This document shows positions 15,429 through 61,234 of a stretch of 64,000 nt of DNA, piece by piece. The position numbers and the translations under genes were made by a program. The notes under the pieces were generated by a model. It was not told the origin of the DNA. It made no database searches and saw only the letters and a program-made list of their open reading frames with translations. The DNA lies in the NCBI GenBank assembly GCA_965202585.1, contig OZ241826.1, positions 44,268,001-44,332,000 of the forward strand. The letters are read 5' to 3'. The DNA comes from Thalia democratica. Lineage: Eukaryota. Position 1 is the stretch's first letter; each line of letters starts with the position of its first letter.

Positions 15429-16173
15429 ATGCTAGAAAATTTCAGTTCTAACATCAACATACTGGACAACATACTGGACATGAACGGCGTCAACGTATTC
15501 GGCGAGAACCGACACGGCATCGGGGGGAACAACCAGCAGAACAATTTCGTGCCCAACGGGGGAGCGGGACCGTTCAACCTGGGAGGAATCTCGGGGGACG
15601 GCATGAACGGGGGACAGCGCAACAACAACGGCCAGGGTCAGAACCACTTCAGCCACGGCGGCGTCTACGTGAACGACATCCTGTGCTGGCTGTCCAACTA
15701 CCACAACCGGTACAACAGCCAGACCCTTTGCCGGCAGATCATGGAGACGTACTCGTCCAACGACATCCTGCAGGCGTGCACCACCCTGAAGGAGATCGCC
15801 ACCACCAACAACACCACCTTCTCCGACAGCTCCGTCTTCTTCAACGACCAGATGTCGCTGGAGGAGAAGACGGTGCGGTGCATGCTGTACATATTCAAGC
15901 TGAACAAGACCGAGCGCAACGTGCTGCCCAGGTTCGTGTCGCAGGGCCTGCACCTGCCCAAGGTGCAGCACTACACGCACGTGGAGCTGCAGGAGCCGCT
16001 GCAGGACCTGAGGGACCACATCACGGAGCAGGTCATGCTGATCAGGAACGAGATGACGAGCATGAAGAGGATGATCACGGCCAAGAGCACGGAGGAGAGC
16101 AACAACATGAACAAGATCATGCAGAACCTGCTGAAGTTCAACAACCAAAACTTTAAAAACTTCAACACGAACA
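15429..16173 (+). CDS. Coding exon 1: G/N-rich N-terminus then LINE ORF1p-like domain (about aa 79-216) with coiled coil
   Basis: Acceptor tttcAG at 15415-15416 with ctaac branch-like motif near 15390, ATG at 15429, donor GTAAGT at 16174. Motifs VNDILCWLSN, TYSSNDILQA..L, LPRFVSQGLHLPKV and a heptad-like L..LRD.I..QV..IRNEM resemble the recalled ORF1 consensus of CR1/L2-group elements (often annotated 'mutant cadherin'). Confidence 0.85.
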
Positions 16174-19100
16174 GTAAGTGTATATTCTAAACTTTTCACC
16201 TTTAATAATTTATTGTTTATAATATTTTTTTTTGTGACACGTTACCAAAAATAATCATTTTTTACAGACTTCTCAAGCACAAACAGTCAGCCTGGGAGCA
16301 AGCTCAACTCGATAAGGGACCAGCTGATTTTGAAGCAGGCCATGAACCAGAAGCAGCAGCAGTTGCAGAACCACCTCAACAAAACAAACAATGTTGTTAA
16401 CTTTGGTGCGACGACTTCCGCCGGCAATTTCGGATTGAACTCGGCAAGCTCCAGCGGAATGGACCTCGGAAGTTTGTTCGGCAGGTCTGGCAATAACTCA
16501 GCGACTTTCCAGCTGGCTGAAACTTCTGATGGCAACAATCAGAATAATGGAAGTGAGTTGAACTTTTCTTAGGCAGAACTTATACTTACGACTATATATG
16601 AGTATTATTTCGACTTAAGGAGATAAAGTTAGCAACTAAGTCACGAAGAGAGAGTTTTGATAACTAATAACTAAACTATTTAAACACGACTCAGCTTATT
16701 TAAAAGTCAAAAATCTGAATCGTTTTAGTATAAATAATGTACATAACTAATTTTACGAATAGTAAAAAGACTTGCTGCAAAACCAGCAATTATTACGTCA
16801 CAACGCGAATCGAATCGTTACTCCATTTTGTTAAGTGTGCTTTTAAGGTTCAATCAGTTGATCGTAAAAAGTATATATGACTGAACAAGTAAAGATTTTA
16901 ATGTTTATATGAAATTAAGTTTAAAAAAAAGCTTATAGTTTATGCTTTGCAACTTTATAACCATTGTAAAGTATGATTTTTCAATTTAAACCGTACTTAA
17001 AAGTTTTCAAAAAATTAACAACTAAAAGTTTTTATGGAAAGCTGAACATGATTTTTATTTATTGTTTATTTTGCAGCAGATAATGAAGAAAACAAAAGTG
17101 AAATTAGCGCAATGGAGATAAATCAGACAGTAAGTTTTGTTTTTTGTTTTAATTCGCATTAAATTTAAAACAAAACGAATATATTAGACAACTAGTCACA
17201 AGTTAAATATTAGTAATGTTATTAATTATGACTATTTTTCCTCAACGTAATTTAAAAAAAGCCAATAAGTTAATTTACTCATATAAATTCAAAGATTACA
17301 ATATTTTTAAAGTCGTTTTAAGTTTAATGCTTTTTTATTATATCACTTAAACAGAGCTGTTGAAACTTTTAGTTACTGTTTTTTGCAGAATTTACAAACA
17401 CATAACAATAGTTTCAAAACTCACAAAAGTTGTTAAATTAACACAAGTGTGATACAATTTGTATTTTTACTTAAAAGTATAATTAGTCGTTAGTTTAGTA
17501 TTTATGACTAAAGCTCAAATGTATTTTGTCAAAGAAAAGATGAAAAAAATTGATAAAACTCGATTCGATCAGCGGTTAAAAAACAGCATTAAGTGCAATT
17601 GAAAACAATAACTCATTTTATAAACACCACCCACGCACCACCATACGCTTGCTCACAAAATAAACAAAAATCACACAGCTCATTCAAAATAAGCTTCGAA
17701 TGGCTTTAATGAAAGTTTAAGTTTCAATTCTCTGATCTTCTTTTCACCTTAGCGAAGCAGATTGTGACGTCACTTGCAGCAAATTCACGTGACGTCATAA
17801 AGTTTAACGCATGCTTTTTATCTGCTCTAACGCGGTGCTAAACTTATGTGACTCGAAAACTGATATAACTAATTTTGAATTTTTTGCTTTATAACTGTTT
17901 ATTTTATTTTATCAAGTATCTTAGAACGACAAAATTAAGTTAGAAATTTTTTTAACCTATACTTTAAGTCCGATTTTTCACAACAAAGTTAAACACCACT
18001 TTTTTTTCACCAGCAAAACGACGACGCTTCGCAGCACTCCGACCAGCGCAGCACGGCCACTCCGAACCAGCAGCCGAAGCAGGCGGAAGTGACGATGCGG
18101 TCGTTCGACCTGTCCTCGAGACCGAACCTCTTCTCGTCCACCATAAACGGGATGAGCGTGTCCGCACTCAACGAGGTCATCAAGAAGTTCTCCTCGGGAA
18201 ACCTGTCATCGCTGGCGGCCGGGGCGGCGAACATGGCGTCCAACAACATCGGCCCGTCCTCGTCGTCAACACCCAACAAGGACGAATCGGTCATGGGTGC
18301 GTTTTTAAACTTTGTAAAAAGCGCATAAAAGTAACTCGTTTAAGTTAAAAAGTTTTAGTTTATAACGATGGTTGCTTATAAAAGATAAAAACGCAATGAG
18401 TCCGTTGAAATATAAAATTGTAAAGTACTCATTTTGTTAAAACTAACGACGTTCTGTGCTCTAGTTACAGCGTAAAGAAACGCCGTCTGTTTCCAGTAAA
18501 CTTAGTAGTTATTAAGACATGTTTAGCTCAATATGTGTCAACAAAAACTAAACATTTTTGATTCATATTAATTTGATTGATAAAATTGAAGGAAACAACG
18601 GACTGTCCAACGGAATGATATTATCCCAAGCAAAAAACGGGTTGATGGCGGCTTCTACCAGCCCACCGGGAACTTACACTTTGAAGCTGGACGAAAATCC
18701 ACTGACCATTACTACTGAGGATCAGGAACTACCGACCATGGTTGTGGTGAGTAACTATAAAATGTTTTCTGATGTATTTCAATGTTTTAGTTGAAAATTC
18801 TTACTTTGAATGACAATTAAATGAGTAAAATAAAATTTTGTTTAGTTCTTTTTCCACTGAATACAACTTTGAAAGTATCAATTTAGAGAAAGCAAAAGTA
18901 AAACTTTAAGGATTCATGCATTTTAGCAATCACAAGATGAACTTGCTTGTCATGAGTTTATAAACTTTTATATTTTGTTTCATATTTTAAAATTGTTTTC
19001 TTAAATTTAAAGCGGTTAAACTTTATATAAAAAACACATGATCAAAAATATCAAGTTGTTCACAGCTTTATCACAAAATTAACTATAGCAATTCTGCATA

Positions 19101-22100
19101 TTATGTGTTTTTTAACGTAAAGTTGTTTTGATAGACTTACTCATGCTTTTTGAACAACTTTAAGTTGTTTACTCATTTAATACATTTAATAGCTTTCAAC
19201 TACTTAATTAACTACTCTTAAAACAGTTTTGTTTATGACTTTTTTTCATACAGCTATGAAAAAACTATTAAGTACTGTATTTTATAAATAAAATATTTAA
19301 TGTCATCATACTCACATTTAATTAAGATAAAATAAGCGCTAAATTAGTTATTCTTTCATATGTTGCTTTATAAAATCTTTAAACTTTTTACTTAGCTGTA
19401 TTTATAGACTACTATATATTTACTAGTTTAATAACAAAAAAAAAAATTAAGCTTAACTTTAGATAAATATTTTTTAGTCTTACCAAAACAAACGCAATCG
19501 TTTAACACATAAATATAAGTTCACCAACTACTTGCTAAAATTTTATTTTAAGCCTTTGCATTAAAGCATTTCGCTTCTAAAGTGACCAAACGTCGATCAA
19601 ATACCCCAATTACATTACATTGAGCACCGTTCTCCTCAAAACTTTCGCTTCGACTCACCGTTGCTCGATTGCGCTTCACCGGCTCAATAGAAAAAGCAGC
19701 AGGAAGTTAATTCGAGCAACTTACATTCAATCACATACACACAAGTCGCGTTTCGAACGCAGCGGCAGCAAAGGGATTTCAGCTCTCAACTCAAAGTCGA
19801 GCGCGGCGATCGCAACTGAAACAATGCAATTTGTTTACAATGCAAATGCGAAAGGCTCGCATTGAACTTTACTCAGCTCACGATCGCCATTCCGATTTAT
19901 CGCGAAGAGAGTTTTTTTCATCGAGCGAAACAAGAAATCTAGATACGAAGCTTCGTGATGTACGCTGAAGCGCCGAGATTACTTTCTTGGATTAATGCAG
20001 GCTGGTTTCGCCGTCTTGTTCTCTTTTTTTGGTGCTTCGGCCTCCTCTGATATCTTGTTCTGCTGGTACCTTGTCTTTCAGCATCAGTAAGTTCTATTGT
20101 GAGGCCTAATGCAAAGTTTTGTTTTGATTTAAACAATTTTAATGGATGGCCCGTACCTCGGTCGCAGTGGTTAGTAGAGGATACAAAGTGAAATTGCCGA
20201 ACAAAAATGTTTCATTTGCTATCGTAAAAACCGCTTTTTTAGTTAAATCTTATTTTTAACCAACTTTCTTATTAAAAACTAATGTTGTTACAATTTTTTA
20301 AGAGTTTACACAAATGTACTGTAAAAAAGTATAAAAATGTTTAAAAAATCAATACACTTTTTACCTGCTCAATTCTCTTAAGTACAGATTCAAATACGAG
20401 CTGAACTATTCGCATTTTAGAAAAATTAAGTTGTTAACGCCTGCAAAGTTCTCATCGCTTTTGCAACGTTAACTCCTAACTTTAACTAGAAAGTCAGCTA
20501 CAAAGTACAAAACTGCAGTTTTTTCCATACAACTGTCAAGTAAGGAGGAAGTGAAACACAAAAACGTGTTGTTTGCGAGTGAGTCTTCGATAGAAGTTTT
20601 ACATGACAAAAAATCACAAGCCTAAAAATAGACGTTGTTAGAATTAAAGCAGCTAGTGATCAAAAGATAAGGAAAACCACAAAAATGCGAAGCTAAAACG
20701 CACTTAAAACGGTTGAGTTTTTCAATATTTCCTTTTGATTTTTTCTCATTAGTAAGATTTTGATAACAGAGTGCTTAATAAAGTTTTCTCATGAAACATT
20801 ACCCAAAAATTTTTGTTTACCTATTTACTTTACACTTTTATAAAAAAGTTAATTCTGCTTCTCTTTTTTTCAAAATAGAAAGTCCACTAATTTAATTTCG
20901 ACATACTCAGTCTTAAAAAGCACCAGTGTTTAGTTTCTTTTGAAACCCGATATCGAAGCTTTAAGCAGTTGTTATCATTTAACATCCAGCCGTCTTTGAT
21001 TGAACCTGTGCAAAATTTTTCCACCACGGTAATATTCTTTCAATGAATCATTTTGTTGATGTTTTTTTCACGGCAAAGTGCGTGCGCACTTGAAACTGCG
21101 GTCGCCAAAATATGATGTTTCCTTTCTGCGGCTTGCAGCGAAACGCAAAAATTAAACTCTTTAATTGAGTGTTACAAGTATATTTTTTTGTTTACAGACG
21201 TTTTTGTTTGCGGTTAAAACAGCGACCAAAAACTTCAAGCAGTATGTAGGTTACACCGAGTTTCAAAACTTCAACGAAAAAGGTAGGAAGGGTTTTTGCT
21301 GTTGTTTTGCTTGCCACTAAGCAAATAGAGCGGCGGCAAAGCAAACGACTCGGCGAACCGGGGTGACACTCAAATATATAGGCCATTCGAAGGCACTTGA
21401 AAACGGCCATCGATTCAATTAAAGCGGCGTCCATATGCATTTATATATATATATAGGTGAAGCGGCTTTGAACCCGGAAAACCTTTCAACGACAATAGCC
21501 GCTGCGCTGAAATTTCTTGAAACCGAAGCGCCGAGTCTATTTTTATGGCGTTCCTTCGCAGAAAAAACTAACATCGTTGCGCGCCTTGAGTCTTTCTCAT
21601 TGTGCGGCCGCACCCTCGGCGTGTTTTTGTTGCCTCCATTGTTCGCCCCACTTCATTGTTCGGCCACTCACGCGGCTCGCCAGCAAACGAGATTCTATTC
21701 ATGTGAAGTCTCCGGTATGCCGCTCTGCCTTTGTTGGCTTTTTTACATGCGAGCTTTATGTGAGCAGAACGAAACAAGTCGTGATTTCGTGAAAATATTG
21801 ATAAGAATGTTTTCAAGAGAAGTCTTACCCGGTTTTTACTTTGTTTTGGAGTTAAGCGTTGTTTTTCTTCTCCTTCAAAAAAAGTAGTTTGTTCAACACT
21901 TTCAGCTTAGTTTTGGTATTAAATGTAGGAAACTAGAGCTATTTTTTGAAAAATTGTTCCATGTTTTGATATATGTAGTTATTTTCTAATAGCATAAAAA
22001 ATATTATTAAAACTTGAGCTACTCAGTTTTATTTCGCTAAAACAGTGGTGAAACAAAATTCTCGAAACTTTTAAAGCATTTTTACAACTAAAATTCGTCA

Positions 22101-23363
22101 TTTATCAAATTATAATTGTATAGAAAAACTATCCAAATAATGAGTACAAATTATAATGTCTTTTAAGCAGATCGGATACTTTATCTTGGTGTCTATTTAT
22201 CACTTATTTATTTCAATCACCACGTATAAAAAATAATAAATATTAAAACTAACATCCGTTGCAAATGCAATTAAACATTTAAGATTAAAAAAATGTTTTC
22301 ACTTTTTAAAGTTTTTGTAAAATGGAAATGCAGTTTTTAAAACATGCACCATATTTACACATCTAAAATTAACAAAAAAATCTTAAACCTAAAAAACAAT
22401 TGTTCACAGAAAAACAACAACTACAAGATGTACAACACCCCGATCAGCCTCAACAGCCGCCGCAGAAACAACCCCCTCTCCCAGATCAACCGGCCCCGCG
22501 TCGTCAACAACAACGGCCAGGTTGCCAACGGCTTCAACGCCACCGCCAACAACCGCCAGTTTTACCAGCAGCGGCACAACGGCAGGGGCGGCACGGGAAG
22601 GAGGAACGCCAAGCAGCACTCGTGCGAGATCTGCGGGTACACGTCCACGCTGACCGACGTGACCAAGCACAAGCGCACCCACACCGGGGAAAAACCCTAC
22701 TCGTGCCCCATCTGCAAGAAGTGCTTCAGCTTGAACAGCAACATGCTCAGGCACTACAGGAAGCACAAGCCGCACGAGCACGAGGCCCTGCAGAAGCGCA
22801 AGGAAGAGGAGGCTGCAGCCGCCGCAGCCAGCACCGCTAAAAACGGGACTGCGCCCGTGGCCGTGCCCCAGGTCACCGACGTGACCGAAGCCCTGCCCAA
22901 GTTCAAGGTCACCAACAACGTCACGGGGCCCAACTCCATACCGGCCTCGGCAATGAAGCTGCCGTTCAGCGCCCAGGTTGAGAGCTCCGTCAACTTTGCC
23001 CGGCCCCTCGTGCTAGTTCAGTCGGCCAACTCTGCAAGTAACAGCTTGCCTGCCGCCATAGCAACGGCCGTCATAACGACGAGCGCTGTAAGCAACAGCC
23101 CCGTCACTTCGCCTGCTGTCTCCATTGCCTCGCCCGGTTCGTCCGCGTCCCAGAACGCCGACTTACCCGTCGTCAAGCAGCAAGCTGCGTCTCCATGCCA
23201 ACCGGTGACCAAGATGGAAGTGAAAGAGGAGGAAGAAGAATGCAAGCCGCCGATGGACCTCTCGGAAAAATCCCCGTCCTCCAACGACGGGTCCTCTGTG
23301 GAGGAGAAGCAAAGTGAAGCCGCTCAAGTTGCTGAGAGACCAAATACCACGAATGCGATTTAA
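15429..23363 (+). CDS. 6-exon gene, 824 aa: N-terminal LINE-ORF1-like domain plus coiled coil, N/Q/S/G low-complexity middle, two C2H2 zinc fingers, C-terminal PxDLS (CtBP) motif; putative transcriptional repressor
   Basis: Exons 15429-16173, 16268-16552, 17077-17129, 18014-18296, 18592-18746, 22410-23363. All introns are GT-AG and the phases chain 1/1/0/1/0. Total 2475 nt = 825 codons with no internal stop. The frames agree with ORF-track entries 15429, 16330, 18089, 18558 and 22344. Exons are GC3-rich against AT-rich introns. The acceptor at 18590-18591 (aattgaAG) is weak, and the exon 5 to exon 6 join is inferred from phase only. Confidence 0.8.
17765..17797. promoter_or_regulatory. Intronic CRE + E-box/CRE cluster
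   Basis: TGACGTCA at 17765-17772 and overlapping TCACGTGA/TGACGTCA at 17785-17797, in intron 3 of the ZF gene. Confidence 0.55.
21442..21455. repeat. Short (TA)n tract inside an intronic GC-rich island (possible TATA element)
   Basis: tatatatatatata in the island 21200-21800. Confidence 0.4.
22410..23363 (+). CDS. Terminal coding exon: two C2H2 zinc fingers (22623-22766) with TGEKPY linker, Ala/Ser/Pro-rich region, VKEE SUMO motif, PMDLS CtBP motif (23250-23264)
   Basis: ORF-track 22344..23363: CEICGYTSTLTDVTKHKRTH-TGEKPY-SCPICKKCFSLNSNMLRHYRKH. Acceptor ttcacAG at 22408-22409, stop TAA at 23361-23363. Confidence 0.93.
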   Translation, partial: KNNNYKMYNTPISLNSRRRNNPLSQINRPRVVNNNGQVANGFNATANNRQFYQQRHNGRGGTGRRNAKQHSCEICGYTSTLTDVTKHKRTHTGEKPYSCPICKKCFSLNSNMLRHYRKHKPHEHEALQKRKEEEAAAAAASTAKNGTAPVAVPQVTDVTEALPKFKVTNNVTGPNSIPASAMKLPFSAQVESSVNFARPLVLVQSANSASNSLPAAIATAVITTSAVSNSPVTSPAVSIASPGSSASQNADLPVVKQQAASPCQPVTKMEVKEEEEECKPPMDLSEKSPSSNDGSSVEEKQSEAAQVAERPNTTNAI

Positions 23364-52610: not shown

Positions 52611-54828
52611 ATGAGTGAAAAAAAGGAAAACAAGTCGCTTCTTCTGGATACTGACAACGTTTCTCTGATAAGTAGAAATTCAACTTCTAATAAGTCAACG
52701 ACATCATTTATAAACGTTAAAGGTACAGGTGGAAGGCCATTCCATACAGCAGTTTCATGCGGATCGAATAAGTTAGGCGAGCTGGGAAACCATTTAGCTG
52801 AAGTTAACGTTCTACAAGCGGCAGAGCAAAGAAGGGCTGCTGAAGATTTGTTGGTTGACAAGGTTCTGAACGGAGGCTTCCGACTCCAGCTTAAAGTGCT
52901 TGAAAAAGTTTTACCGTCACTGGCGAATGATATTACCTTGGAAAAGCTTTCGAGAGAGATGCAAATTATTTTGAATGTTAGCCAGTTGACAGAGCATCGT
53001 CCCAGTGGAAAGCAATGCAAGCTTGGAAAATTTTCAGTATCCGAGGAATCGTTAAGAAAAGTTTATGAAATTGAAGAATCGAACAAAAACACAAATTTAG
53101 GCAGGAATTCAATACTAGACAAGCTGGATTTTTTTTTAAACATTCTCAAGCTGTAAGTGTACATTTGAGAAAGCTTGCCGAACTTTCAAAAGTTGTACCA
53201 AGTTAAATAAAATTCTGCAAAAATGTTTTTGATAACCTCCAGACTATTGTAAGACGCCAAGCAGTTACTGACGAGCCCTTTGCTGCTTTAAATATCAGAA
53301 AGTTAACCCGTTTGAAGAGCTTCCTGCCCTTGCATCCTCTCAGAAATTACAAATGTGCCAAACTGATTCACGAGTTCGGAACGGGATTTTATGTGGATTT
53401 TATCTCAAGTTTCTTCTCAAATGACGAGTTTGCTCCTAGTTATGTTCTTAGTAGCCTGTTGTGGATCAACTTCGAGAACTTGCACGTTGGCTTGAACTGT
53501 ATATTCCACTTCTGATTAAACTTAGTGGATTTTTTTCGAAGTTAGATGGAACAACATCACCCGATGATTAGGAAGAACTCTATTGTCATTTTCTGAGTGA
53601 ACAGGAGAAAATGTTATCGGAATTTAAGTTTTCTGACCCGCCTTGTGAAAATGTAGATTTTGCCTTTCAATTGATTTATATAGTCAATACCAGTGGCGTA
53701 GCGTGGTATTTTGGTCAGGGGGTGCGCAAATTTTTTTCTCAAAAAATCCTCTAAATTAAAACTTTTGTAATAAGCTATAAAAAAACTTTTTATAAGTAAT
53801 ATAATTGAAATAAATTTATGAAATAAAATAAGTTCGTTAACTGTTTAAAATAATATTTATATATTACAAAATTAAACAATTAAATAAAAGTAAAAATTTC
53901 ATTAGAATTACTTATACTTGCAAAAATGTATACTTACTTAATAAAAATTGTTTTTATAACTTATAGTAAACTTTATATCTTTAAAAATTAATATATTCAA
54001 TAAGACGAAAGTATCGGTTTTATTTACGAAAAAAATATCAATCTCTTTTATATACAATACAACAGTGATAACAACACCTCATTGCACATAATTTTAATAA
54101 AGTTACACTGAAGTTAAAATAGACCAACTTTATAACTGTTATTACAGTTTATTACAACTTTGTAAAATAGTAAAAAGTATACTTTTTAAATTTAATTCAT
54201 TTGATTGTATTTGTTTAAAATAAAAATCACAAACAATGTTTATTTCTCATAGGCCGACACGCTTATCTTGTCGGTTTACAAAAATAAAGTTGAGAAAACT
54301 AGCAATAGTCTTAACAATGTAGCATAAAAAAAAATGTAAAATTGTTTAATTTTTCTTTAAGCGTGACGTATTTTTGTAAACTTTTTGTAGAAAAATAATT
54401 TGCCATAAGGTTATACTACAGCGGTGCGCTATATTAATTGCGTACTTTTTGAGTCTAAATTCTTATGAAATTAATGAACTTATAAATTTTATCTTTATGG
54501 AGTTTTTCATCAACATCGGTGCGTATTTGCAATTACGCACCGAATCAGTATATTGAGTAATAACATGTACTTTCCTAACTTGTCACTAATTGGTATTCAA
54601 AATTTCGTTTAACTTTTTGAATACTAGATAAACATAGTTAAAAAAAGGCAAATTAAGCAGAAAAAATAAACTATAAAGGATAGAAATATTACATTCTTTT
54701 TTTTTAATTTTTCTTTTTTTGGGTGGCACGCATGCGCCAGTGTCCCTCCCCACGCTACGCCCCTGGTCAATACCCTTATTGTGGATGTGAGTTCGGAAAT
54801 CGGAGATCGGGTGTCGAAAATTTGGTAA
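52611..54828 (+). pseudogene. Orphan-family copy 1, disrupted
   Basis: Homologous to the 60152 ORF. 1-nt frameshift in the T/A run near 53130 giving TAA at 53154-53156, a further in-frame TAA near 53204, another frameshift near 53440-53460, and a hAT MITE inserted close to the C-terminus. Homologous stop at 54826-54828. Confidence 0.8.
53691..54765. mobile_element. Non-autonomous hAT-superfamily element (MITE), 1075 bp
   Basis: 16-bp TIRs CAGTGGCGTAGCGTGG / CCACGCTACGCCCCTG (1 mismatch) and a perfect 8-bp TSD GTCAATAC at 53683-53690 and 54766-54773. No transposase ORF. Confidence 0.9.
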
Positions 54829-56817: not shown

Positions 56818-57944
56818 ATGAGTGAAAAAAAGGAAAATGTGTCGCTTTATCTGGATACCGGCAACGTTTCTCTGATAAGTGGAAATATGAGTTACAAAAA
56901 ACAATTGGCGCCCTTCATCAACATCAAAGGTACAGGCGGTGGAAGGCCAGTCCCTACAGCAGTGCCGTTCGGATCGAACGAGGTAGGCGAGCTGGGAAAC
57001 CATTCAGCTGAAGTTGTTGCTCTACAAGCGGCAGAGAAAATAAGGGCTGCTGAAGATACGTTGGTTGACAAGGTTCTGAACGGAGGCCTCCGACTTAAAT
57101 TTAAAGTTATTGAAAATGTTTTTCCGTCTTTGGCGAATGAGATTACCTAGGAAAAGCTTTCAAGAGAAATGCAAATTATTTTGAATGAAAGTAAGTTGAC
57201 AAAGCAGCGTCCTAGTCGAACGCAAAGCAAGCTTGAAAAACTTTCGAAGTCCAAGGAGTTTTTTTAATAAAAGCTGAAATAATTGGAGTATCGGAAAAAA
57301 ATATAAAGTTAAGCAACAATTTAGTGCTAAAGCAGATGGATTTTTTTTTAAAGATGCTCCAGCTGTAAAAGTACTTTTGGGCAGGCTTGCTGACCTTGTT
57401 TAAGTTATAACAATTTTTCAAAATTCTGCAAAAATATGATAGTAAATCTGAGGATTATAGTCGAACGCCAACCTGTTACTGACAAGCCCTTTGAATTTAC
57501 TATTGCTTTAAATGGTAGACACTTGATTTGTTTTCATACATACTTGCCCGAACGTCTTATCAAATAATAAAAATATGCCGATTTTTTTCACTCGTTCAGC
57601 AAATTCTACGTGAAATATTTTGCGAAATTTTCCGTCAAGAAACATTTTTGTACGCCTGTTGTGGTTCACATTTTCAAGAACTTGCATGTTGGCTTCAACT
57701 GTACATTCCACTGCTGGTAGAACTCGGAATCTCGGTTTCCCACGTAAACGGAAGAACATCACCCGGTGATTGGCAAGAACTTTATCGTGATTTTCAGAGT
57801 GAGCAAGAAAATACGATTTCTGAATTTAAATTTATTGGCTAGCTTTTTCAAAATTTAGATTTCGCCTATCATTCGATTTGTATCGTCGATGCTTTTATTA
57901 AGAAAGTGAGTATAAAAATTGGAGATCGAATTTCGATAAAGTAG
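56818..57944 (+). pseudogene. Orphan-family copy 2, disrupted
   Basis: MSEKKENVSLYLDTGN start homologous to copies 1 and 3. TAG at 57148-57150 (TTG in copy 1), further stops near 57265-57280, and frameshifts. Homologous stop at 57942-57944. Confidence 0.8.
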
Positions 57945-60130: not shown

Positions 60131-61234
60131 ATGAGTGAAAAAAAATAAAATGTGTCGCTTCATCTGGATACCGGCAACGTTTCTCTGATAAGTGGAAATT
60201 CAACTTCTAACAAGTCAACGACATCATTTATAAACGTTAAAGGTACAGGTGGAAGGCCATTCCATACAGCAGTTCCATGCGGATCGAATAAGTTAGGCGA
60301 GCTGGGAAACCATTTAGCTGAAGTTAACGTTCTACAAGCGGCAGAGCAAAGAAGGGCTGCTGAAGATTTGTTGGTTGACAAGGTTATGAACGGAGGCCTC
60401 CGACTTCAGCTTAAAGTTCTTGCAAAAGTTTCACCGTCAGTGAAGGAGACTACCTTTGCCAAGTTTTCCAAAGAGATGCAAATAATTTTGAATGAAAGCC
60501 AGCTGACAGAGTACCGTCCTAATGAAAAGCAATGCAAGCAAGGAAAAGTTTCAAAACCAAAGGAATTGTTAGTAGATGAATCAAACAAAAACACAAGGTT
60601 AAGCAAAAGTTTGTATTTTTTCATTAAAGACGCTCAAGCTGTAAGTTTACTTTGGAGCGGACTTGCCGATCTTTGTAAAGTTATAGCACTTTTTACAGGA
60701 TTCTGTAAAAATATTTTTGAAAATCTTAAGGATATTGTAGGACGCCTACCAGTTGCTGACGGGTTCTTTGAAATTGCTGCTTCGAACATTAGACAGTTGA
60801 TTCGTATGAAGACCTGTCTGCCCATGCATCTTCTCGGAAAATACAAATGTGCCAAACATTTTTACGAGTTCAGCACGGGATATTACGTGGATTATTTCTT
60901 GTATTTCTTCGTCTACGACGATGCTGACTATCATCTTCATAAGAAATTTGTAGAATATCTTCAAGAACTTGCAAGCTGGCTTGAGCTGTTCATTCCGCTG
61001 CTGGTAAGACTAGGAACGTCGGTTTTCCACTTTAACGGGAGAACGTCTCGCGATGATTGGGAAGAACTTTACCGTGATTATCAAAATGAGCAAGGAAAAA
61101 CGAACTCGGAATTTAAATTTACTGCCTTGCCTGATCAAAATTTTCATTTTGCCTATCTGTTGACTTCTATTGTCGACGCCTTTATTAAGGATGTAGGTTT
61201 GGAACTGAAAGTAATGTGGAAAATGGAAAGTTAG
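60131..61234 (+). pseudogene. Orphan-family copy 3: intronless, nonsense at codon 6 but otherwise open 360-codon frame; possibly expressed as a 282-aa form from ATG 60386
   Basis: ATG AGT GAA AAA AAA TAA (60131-60148), where copy 2 reads ATG AGT GAA AAA AAG GAA. The frame is then open from 60149 to 61234. No recognisable domain; the C-terminal part looks helical. Confidence 0.65.

Follow-up and report, generated by a model that had tools for sequence, protein, structure and literature searches.

Gene structure and expression

The window, i.e., the whole stretch of 64,000 nucleotides that was analysed, contains on its forward strand a gene of six exons (15429-16173, 16268-16552, 17077-17129, 18014-18296, 18592-18746 and 22410-23363). 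GT/AG borders are found throughout and the chain stays in frame to give a product of 824 aa, as had been proposed by a sequence-only reading of this DNA, in which a LINE ORF1-like domain exon was linked to a C2H2 exon. From the N-terminus, the product consists of a low-complexity segment, a helical globular domain of ~100 aa with a long helix, an Asn/Gln/Ser-rich linker of ~320 aa between helix and fingers, two C2H2 fingers and an acidic tail bearing a PxDLS-type motif.

Exon 1 (15429-16173, +) ends in a phase-1 donor (GTAAGT), has P0001 and P0002 as orthologous ORFs, and encodes an Asn/Gly/Gln-rich N-terminus followed by the ORF1-like domain and the long helix. The stretch 15663-16076 (+) corresponds to aa 79-216 of the ATG-initiated ORF 15429-16190, beginning with VYVNDILCWLSN and ending with IRNEM, and its translation is identical to the peptide quoted earlier. 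The globular part of the domain (~aa 79-180; 15663-15968, +) was delimited by the family alignment, the AF2 model, and the coverage of Foldseek and Atlas alignments (see below). It is predicted to fold as a strand, four helices and a strand, and contains conserved NDxLC, TYSSxDI, EEK and LPxFVSxGLHLPK motifs. A long amphipathic, coiled-coil-like helix is predicted behind it (15981-16172, +) from AF2 models, the coiled-coil matches of VIA-align and the hydrophobic pattern; it extends over residues 110-148 in the alignment-based AF2 model and 109-172 in the single-sequence model. The GC3 values of exons 1, 4 and 6 are 0.92, 0.87 and 0.81, respectively, and the domain exon thus has the codon bias common to the other large exons, in agreement with the host-type bias ascribed to it before. 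No match to endonuclease or reverse transcriptase (RT) families, among those tested, was given by the ORFs of at least 110 aa in the window, which agrees with the reported lack of an endonuclease/RT ORF2.

The middle of the gene is made up of exon 2 (16268-16552, +), which encodes a low-complexity linker, exon 3 (17077-17129, +) of 53 nt, exon 4 (18014-18296, +) and exon 5 (18592-18746, +). Exon 5 was aligned with P0041, the product of a divergent ortholog (see below), in which the motif LTITTEDQELPTMVV, encoded by the last 15 codons (18702-18746, +), is conserved. This motif is almost unchanged in P0041 within an otherwise unalignable linker, and may be a docking motif.

Splicing was analysed by comparison of Logan contigs of four runs (X1, X2, X4 and X6) with positions 16480-22479. 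GT..AG joints were present in the RNA contigs at 16552/17077, 17129/18014, 18295/18591 and 18745/22409, the last two becoming the proposed junctions 18296/18592 and 18746/22410 when the cut is placed one position rightward; four of the five proposed junctions were thereby reproduced. The junction behind exon 2 was seen in X1 and X6, those flanking exon 3 among X1, X2 and X6, and those of exon 4 among all four runs. In X6 the joint of exons 4 and 5 is 18294/18591 with one extra T, a single-base difference from the 18295/18591 of the other runs. X1, X2 and X4 are three marine metatranscriptome runs covering two samples of one study; the same spliced forms were observed in them, and the X4 contigs come from a relative with 90-95% identity. 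Matches in marine metatranscriptomes are in keeping with a planktonic animal as the source.

The fifth junction, 16173/16268, was approached from two sides. In a related species, exons 1 and 2 are joined directly: in the 1409-nt metatranscriptome contig L015, whose ORF has 80% identity in the domain, exon 1 is followed immediately by exons 2 and 3, and the sequence continues into intron 3. For the sequenced organism itself the junction is implied by the length and word share of the X6 material. Record 16 of X6 (2594 nt) derives from the sequenced organism, is essentially identical to the window and spans exon 2 to exon 6, with a further 937 nt ahead of position 16480 and 1094 nt past 22409. 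These flanks would take it past the stop codon and, provided that intron 1 is spliced out, to within ~20 nt of the ATG. Of the words sampled from 15429-16552 the run contains 0.84, the share to be expected with only intron 1 and the first bases missing, and of the exon-6 words 0.97. Judging from length and word share, the contig thus includes exon 1 and the stop codon. Altogether, the five introns are confirmed or implied by RNA contigs and spliced mRNA was found in three independent samples. Evidently, the gene is real, spliced, expressed and, as described below, conserved.

Exon 6 (22410-23363, +) encodes the two C2H2 fingers, an Ala/Ser-rich tail and PMDLS before the stop codon; it was established by Pfam, by the orthologs P0012 (98% identity) and P0013 (91% identity) and by RNA contigs entering from exon 5. 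Finger 1 (22617-22682, +) was read from the sequence as C-x2-C-x11-H-x3-H and has zf-H2C2_2 and zf-C2H2 matches, while finger 2 (22698-22766, +), located after a TGEKP linker, is canonical and corresponds to the Pfam zf-C2H2 match over exon-6 peptide residues 97-119. The zf-C2H2 model scored 28.9 bits on exon 6 against a cut-off of 25.2, with two stretches, and zf-H2C2_2 also matched. Tandem C2H2 fingers with a TGEKP linker are the hallmark by which the product is assigned to the C2H2 zinc-finger transcription factors. The two fingers are the most conserved part of the protein and have no close paralog in the genome, the next-best matches being generic C2H2 clusters at ~40% identity. The search with exon 6 likewise returned generic C2H2 matches only, with no orthology to a named factor, and the Pfam search gave no SCAN or KRAB match in the gene.

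PMDLS, which the sequence-only reading had noted together with the two fingers, is located at nt 23250-23264 (+) and represents a putative CtBP-interaction motif of PxDLS type. It is kept as PMDLS in P0012 and P0013 and replaced by PLDLA in P0041 and by PMNLA in P0048, a further ortholog of the finger exon. The motif suggests that PMDLS may recruit CtBP; its length of only five residues and its variability among orthologs weigh against this assignment.

Conservation, selection and copy number

Among 1.84 billion representative proteins, phmmer recognised only eight relatives of the domain, and a profile search added two further members. The domain family comprises at least 12 distinct sequences, in which NDxLC, TYSS, EEK, LPxFVS and LP are invariant or near-invariant; such positions show that the domain is not a chance ORF. 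In a midpoint-rooted tree of 12 domain sequences, a clade of the zinc-finger gene (n = 9) is separated from a clade of a paralog (n = 3, see below).

The most informative relative is P0041, a 485-aa ORF on a 2632-nt mRNA contig (L054) of a divergent species, which was found by the exon 6 search. Its layout is that of the window gene: N-domain, helix, motif TITSEDQELPTMVV, two C2H2 fingers and PLDLA. The N-domain is 42% identical over 146 aa and the two fingers ~89%, and the same layout in so divergent a species indicates that the fusion of domain and fingers is old. The genomic contigs of distant orthologs (L011, L012, L055 and L056) are shorter than the span from domain exon to finger exon.

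Comparison of the domain with L046 gave dN = 0.044, dS = 0.163 and dN/dS = 0.27, which indicates purifying selection, as would be expected of the domestication proposed earlier. With L015, dN is 0.108 and dS is saturated, so that dN/dS is not computable. The GC3 of the same gene varies with species, being 0.92 here, 0.86 in L046, 0.48 in L015 and 0.21 in L054, and this wide spread accounts for the saturation of dS.

Protein and profile searches located the domain at two loci, plus duplicate contigs, in the 800-Mb assembly. Neither locus adjoins an ORF2. Thus, the many dispersed copies with ORF2, which would have spoken against domestication, were not encountered, and the gene shows none of the marks of a mobile or decayed LINE (dispersed copies, an adjacent EN/RT ORF2, lack of introns). 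Two paralogous loci and their duplicate contigs were found instead. This locus has a duplicate on the small unplaced contig C665, where C665:18105-18623 and C665:24979-25299 are 100% protein-level matches to exon 1 and exon 6, respectively; it is probably a haplotig or assembly duplicate and no second gene.

The paralog (C1:44226134-44226598, minus strand; locus L009:1504-2574, minus strand) lies 57 kb upstream of the gene, ~41 kb before the start of the window. It is a stand-alone single ORF of 357 aa with a Ser/Asn-rich N-terminal half and the domain at the C-terminus, without zinc-finger exons. Its stop position is conserved in P0007, its dN/dS against L047 is 0.33-0.36, and a near-identical duplicate is present on the unplaced contig C855. 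The attributes by which a domesticated sequence is recognized were all observed: the domain occurs in few copies, has orthologs in several species, is under purifying selection and is expressed.

Predicted fold and its relation to LINE-encoded proteins

Sequence comparison gave little on the ancestry of the domain. Pfam returned no match on exon 1 at E up to 1, PF02994 (Transposase_22) included, the PDB sequence search was empty, and the Atlas feature search of exon 1 yielded nothing usable. The phmmer, hmmsearch and profile searches recovered family members only and no LINE ORF1 at the sequence level; the link to LINEs is therefore structural only. The resemblance to LINE ORF1p which the sequence-only reading had proposed is seen in the predicted fold (Foldseek probability 1.00); phmmer and hmmsearch led to the host family alone.

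In the alignment-based AF2 model (pLDDT 81), four helices are enclosed by two strands and followed by a helix of 40 residues; this model was used in place of the single-sequence model (pLDDT 60), which was set aside. It was compared by Foldseek with 2.3 million AFDB clusters and the best 30 matches were evaluated. All 30 have a probability of 1.00, with E from 6e-7 to 3e-2. Six of these best 30 are named as endonuclease/exonuclease/phosphatase (EEP)- or RT-domain proteins, and in five of the six the alignment begins at residue 1-3; eight are lepidopteran entries named 'Mutant cadherin', and the remainder are without EEP/RT or cadherin names. The 'mutant cadherin' mis-annotation had been predicted for this type of domain. 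An intact CR1 element is inserted in a pink-bollworm cadherin allele, as cited in PMC6522560 (reference 26, Fabrick 2011), and judging from this citation the insertion is the likely origin of the 'Mutant cadherin' label; it would also be a weak pointer to a CR1 origin of the domain.

Matches in the ESM Atlas gave TM by query of 0.60-0.63 and rmsd of 2.4-3.1 Å over 105-108 residues of the globular part; the matched clusters are unnamed, comprise 84-155 members and come from arthropods and chordates. The same model found no match in Swiss-Prot (550,129 entries; best probability 0.14) and no solved homologue in the PDB, from which it follows that the fold match is specific and the fold has no solved representative. 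With VIA-align against solved structures the best Z was 5.9, and nearly all rows placed the long helix on coiled coils. For instance, on the L1 ORF1p coiled coil (6fia) the helix alone aligns with Z = 5.2, like dozens of other coiled coils. According to these models, the predicted fold of the N-terminal module is one specifically shared with the N-terminal domain of LINE-encoded proteins, and homology rather than analogy is suggested.

LINEs of the same genome were compared with the family as well. At 30 loci with LINE endonuclease matches (L016-L045) the ORFs do not match the family HMM. These loci belong to a very abundant LINE family, which has many copies with open ORF2 frames of 982-992 aa and looks young; one inspected copy, L029 (ORF1 at L029:157-1073), has a coiled-coil ORF and then an RRM-like ORF. 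When JGI metagenome contigs were scanned with the family alignment, 124 pattern matches arose, none of which was confirmed. ORF1 proteins of the Jockey superfamily have been grouped into types with RRM, CCHC, PHD, esterase, coiled coil and CTD, plus 'unclassified' ones (PMC4120745), and the domain is absent from the named types of this 2014 survey. With a pI of 7.8 the globular domain is close to neutral, which is no indication of nucleic-acid binding by it. The homodimer prediction for domain and helix scored 0.01, with an uncertain predicted fold, and favours neither a dimer nor a monomer.

Origin of the domain and comparison with known systems

Taken together, these results are best explained by an expressed single-copy host gene for a sequence-specific transcription factor, whose N-terminal effector module originated as the N-terminal domain of a non-LTR (LINE) retrotransposon protein, and we assign to this reading a probability of about 0.6. 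A transfer in the opposite direction, by capture of a host domain into LINEs, or a common third source would produce the same homology. In its favour, CR1/L2 ORF1 regions have a modular make-up and exchange domains, PHD and esterase among them (PMC4120745); moreover, in the top AFDB matches, C3YBG5 and C3YY00, and in a BESS-domain protein, none of them with an EN/RT name, the fold lies at a distance from the N-terminus. However, the fold is located at the very N-terminus of several unrelated EN/RT-named entries, while the host family amounts to only ~12 sequences, with no named protein of an annotated genome, in a search of 1.8 billion proteins. The wide range of the mobile elements against the narrow range of the host gene favours, by parsimony, a transfer from LINE to host, and the capture or third-source origin appears unlikely.

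It may further be argued that the N-domain is a lineage-specific invention unrelated to LINEs and the fold match an analogy. A small helical bundle with a long helix is a common arrangement, the TM-scores are moderate (0.45-0.63) with identities of 9-27%, both of the compared structures are predictions, and no LINE protein matched at the sequence level. On the other hand, the best 30 matches, all at probability 1.00, form one coherent set (EN/RT-linked, 'Mutant cadherin' and unnamed multi-copy entries) and no random helical mix, the same model is empty against Swiss-Prot and the PDB, and in the Atlas alignments 105-108 of the initial 110-130 residues superpose at 2.4-3.1 Å. That the 'mutant cadherin' label was foretold from sequence motifs before any search also argues against analogy, which we consider rather improbable. 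Exon 1 as a recently exonised TE fragment, or as part of a still-mobile element, finds nothing in its favour beyond the fold similarity itself, and it is contradicted by conservation and selection: only two loci exist in 800 Mb, the reading frame is preserved in orthologs of several species, where dN/dS is well below 1, the same fusion occurs in a species 42% identical in the domain, the codon bias is common to the other exons, and spliced mRNA is present in three independent samples. It was therefore rejected, its probability being very small.

If the module is of LINE origin and was domesticated as an interaction domain, a mode of action can be sketched. The C2H2 fingers would bind DNA, the PxDLS motif would recruit CtBP-type co-repressors, and the LINE-derived domain with its helix would mediate self-association or partner binding, so that this two-finger factor would act as a repressor. 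Oligomerisation, CtBP recruitment and repression are thus the putative functions. The arrangement would be parallel to the SCAN domain in vertebrate zinc-finger proteins, which derives from the capsid domain of a retroelement Gag. As in the SCAN-C2H2 proteins, a domain of a retroelement structural protein seems to be placed N-terminally on a C2H2 factor as a putative interaction or oligomerisation module. Unlike in them, the source would be a LINE-type protein and not an LTR Gag, Pfam gave neither a SCAN nor a KRAB match, only two fingers are present in a finger region without close paralog (i.e., without an expanded family), and the host is a marine invertebrate.

Repressors which recruit CtBP through a PxDLS motif include Kruppel, Knirps and ZEB. 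The gene resembles them in having C2H2 fingers and a C-terminal PxDLS-type motif of putative function, and differs in having no orthology to any named factor. The LINE N-termini themselves ('Mutant cadherin' of Lepidoptera and the EN/RT-preceding entries of AlphaFold DB) share with the domain the predicted order of strand, four helices, strand and long helix, at a Foldseek probability of 1.00 and with up to 27% identity over 105 residues, a similarity too low for phmmer or hmmsearch. In contrast to them, the domain here is present at two loci, is joined by splicing to zinc-finger exons and is not followed by RRM/CCHC or an EN/RT ORF2.

Very few host genes derive from a LINE first-ORF protein; those found were L1TD1 and other L1 ORF1-derived genes or exons (PMC12129022) and the EKA effector family of powdery mildew, derived from the ORF1 of a LINE (PMC4641428). 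L1TD1 is similar in being a host gene made from a LINE first-ORF-type protein, but its source is an L1-type ORF1 (coiled coil, RRM and CTD; Transposase_22), for which there is no match here and the fold differs. The EKA genes are likewise derived from LINE ORF1; they are fungal, multi-copy effectors without fusion to a DNA-binding domain, whereas here the module is fused to C2H2 fingers. All these examples come from other ORF1 types, and the present gene would use a different, uncharacterised LINE N-terminal domain. The logic of the SCAN-zinc-finger proteins would be repeated from a different class of retroelement in a conserved two-finger factor of a marine invertebrate. The gene would also provide a tractable single-copy protein for learning the role of a widespread LINE domain, e.g., in oligomerisation or partner binding.

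A more speculative proposal is that the LINE-derived domain has remained able to recognise LINE proteins or RNPs, and that the zinc-finger factor and its paralog 57 kb away form a host defence pair. Such a pair would target or poison retrotransposon particles in a decoy-Gag-like manner instead of acting as an ordinary developmental repressor. It would, if true, also be the earliest description of a LINE first-ORF domain without name, Pfam model or solved structure being put to use by a host; we regard this proposal as a long shot.

Elsewhere in the window, three tandem paralogous ORFs are located at 52611-53156, 56818-57150 and 60152-61234 (+), the longest of which encodes 360 aa. None of them matched Pfam, and they have a common N-terminus, MSEKKEN..LDT.NVSLIS..INVKGTGGRP..LGELGNH.AEV..LQAAE.
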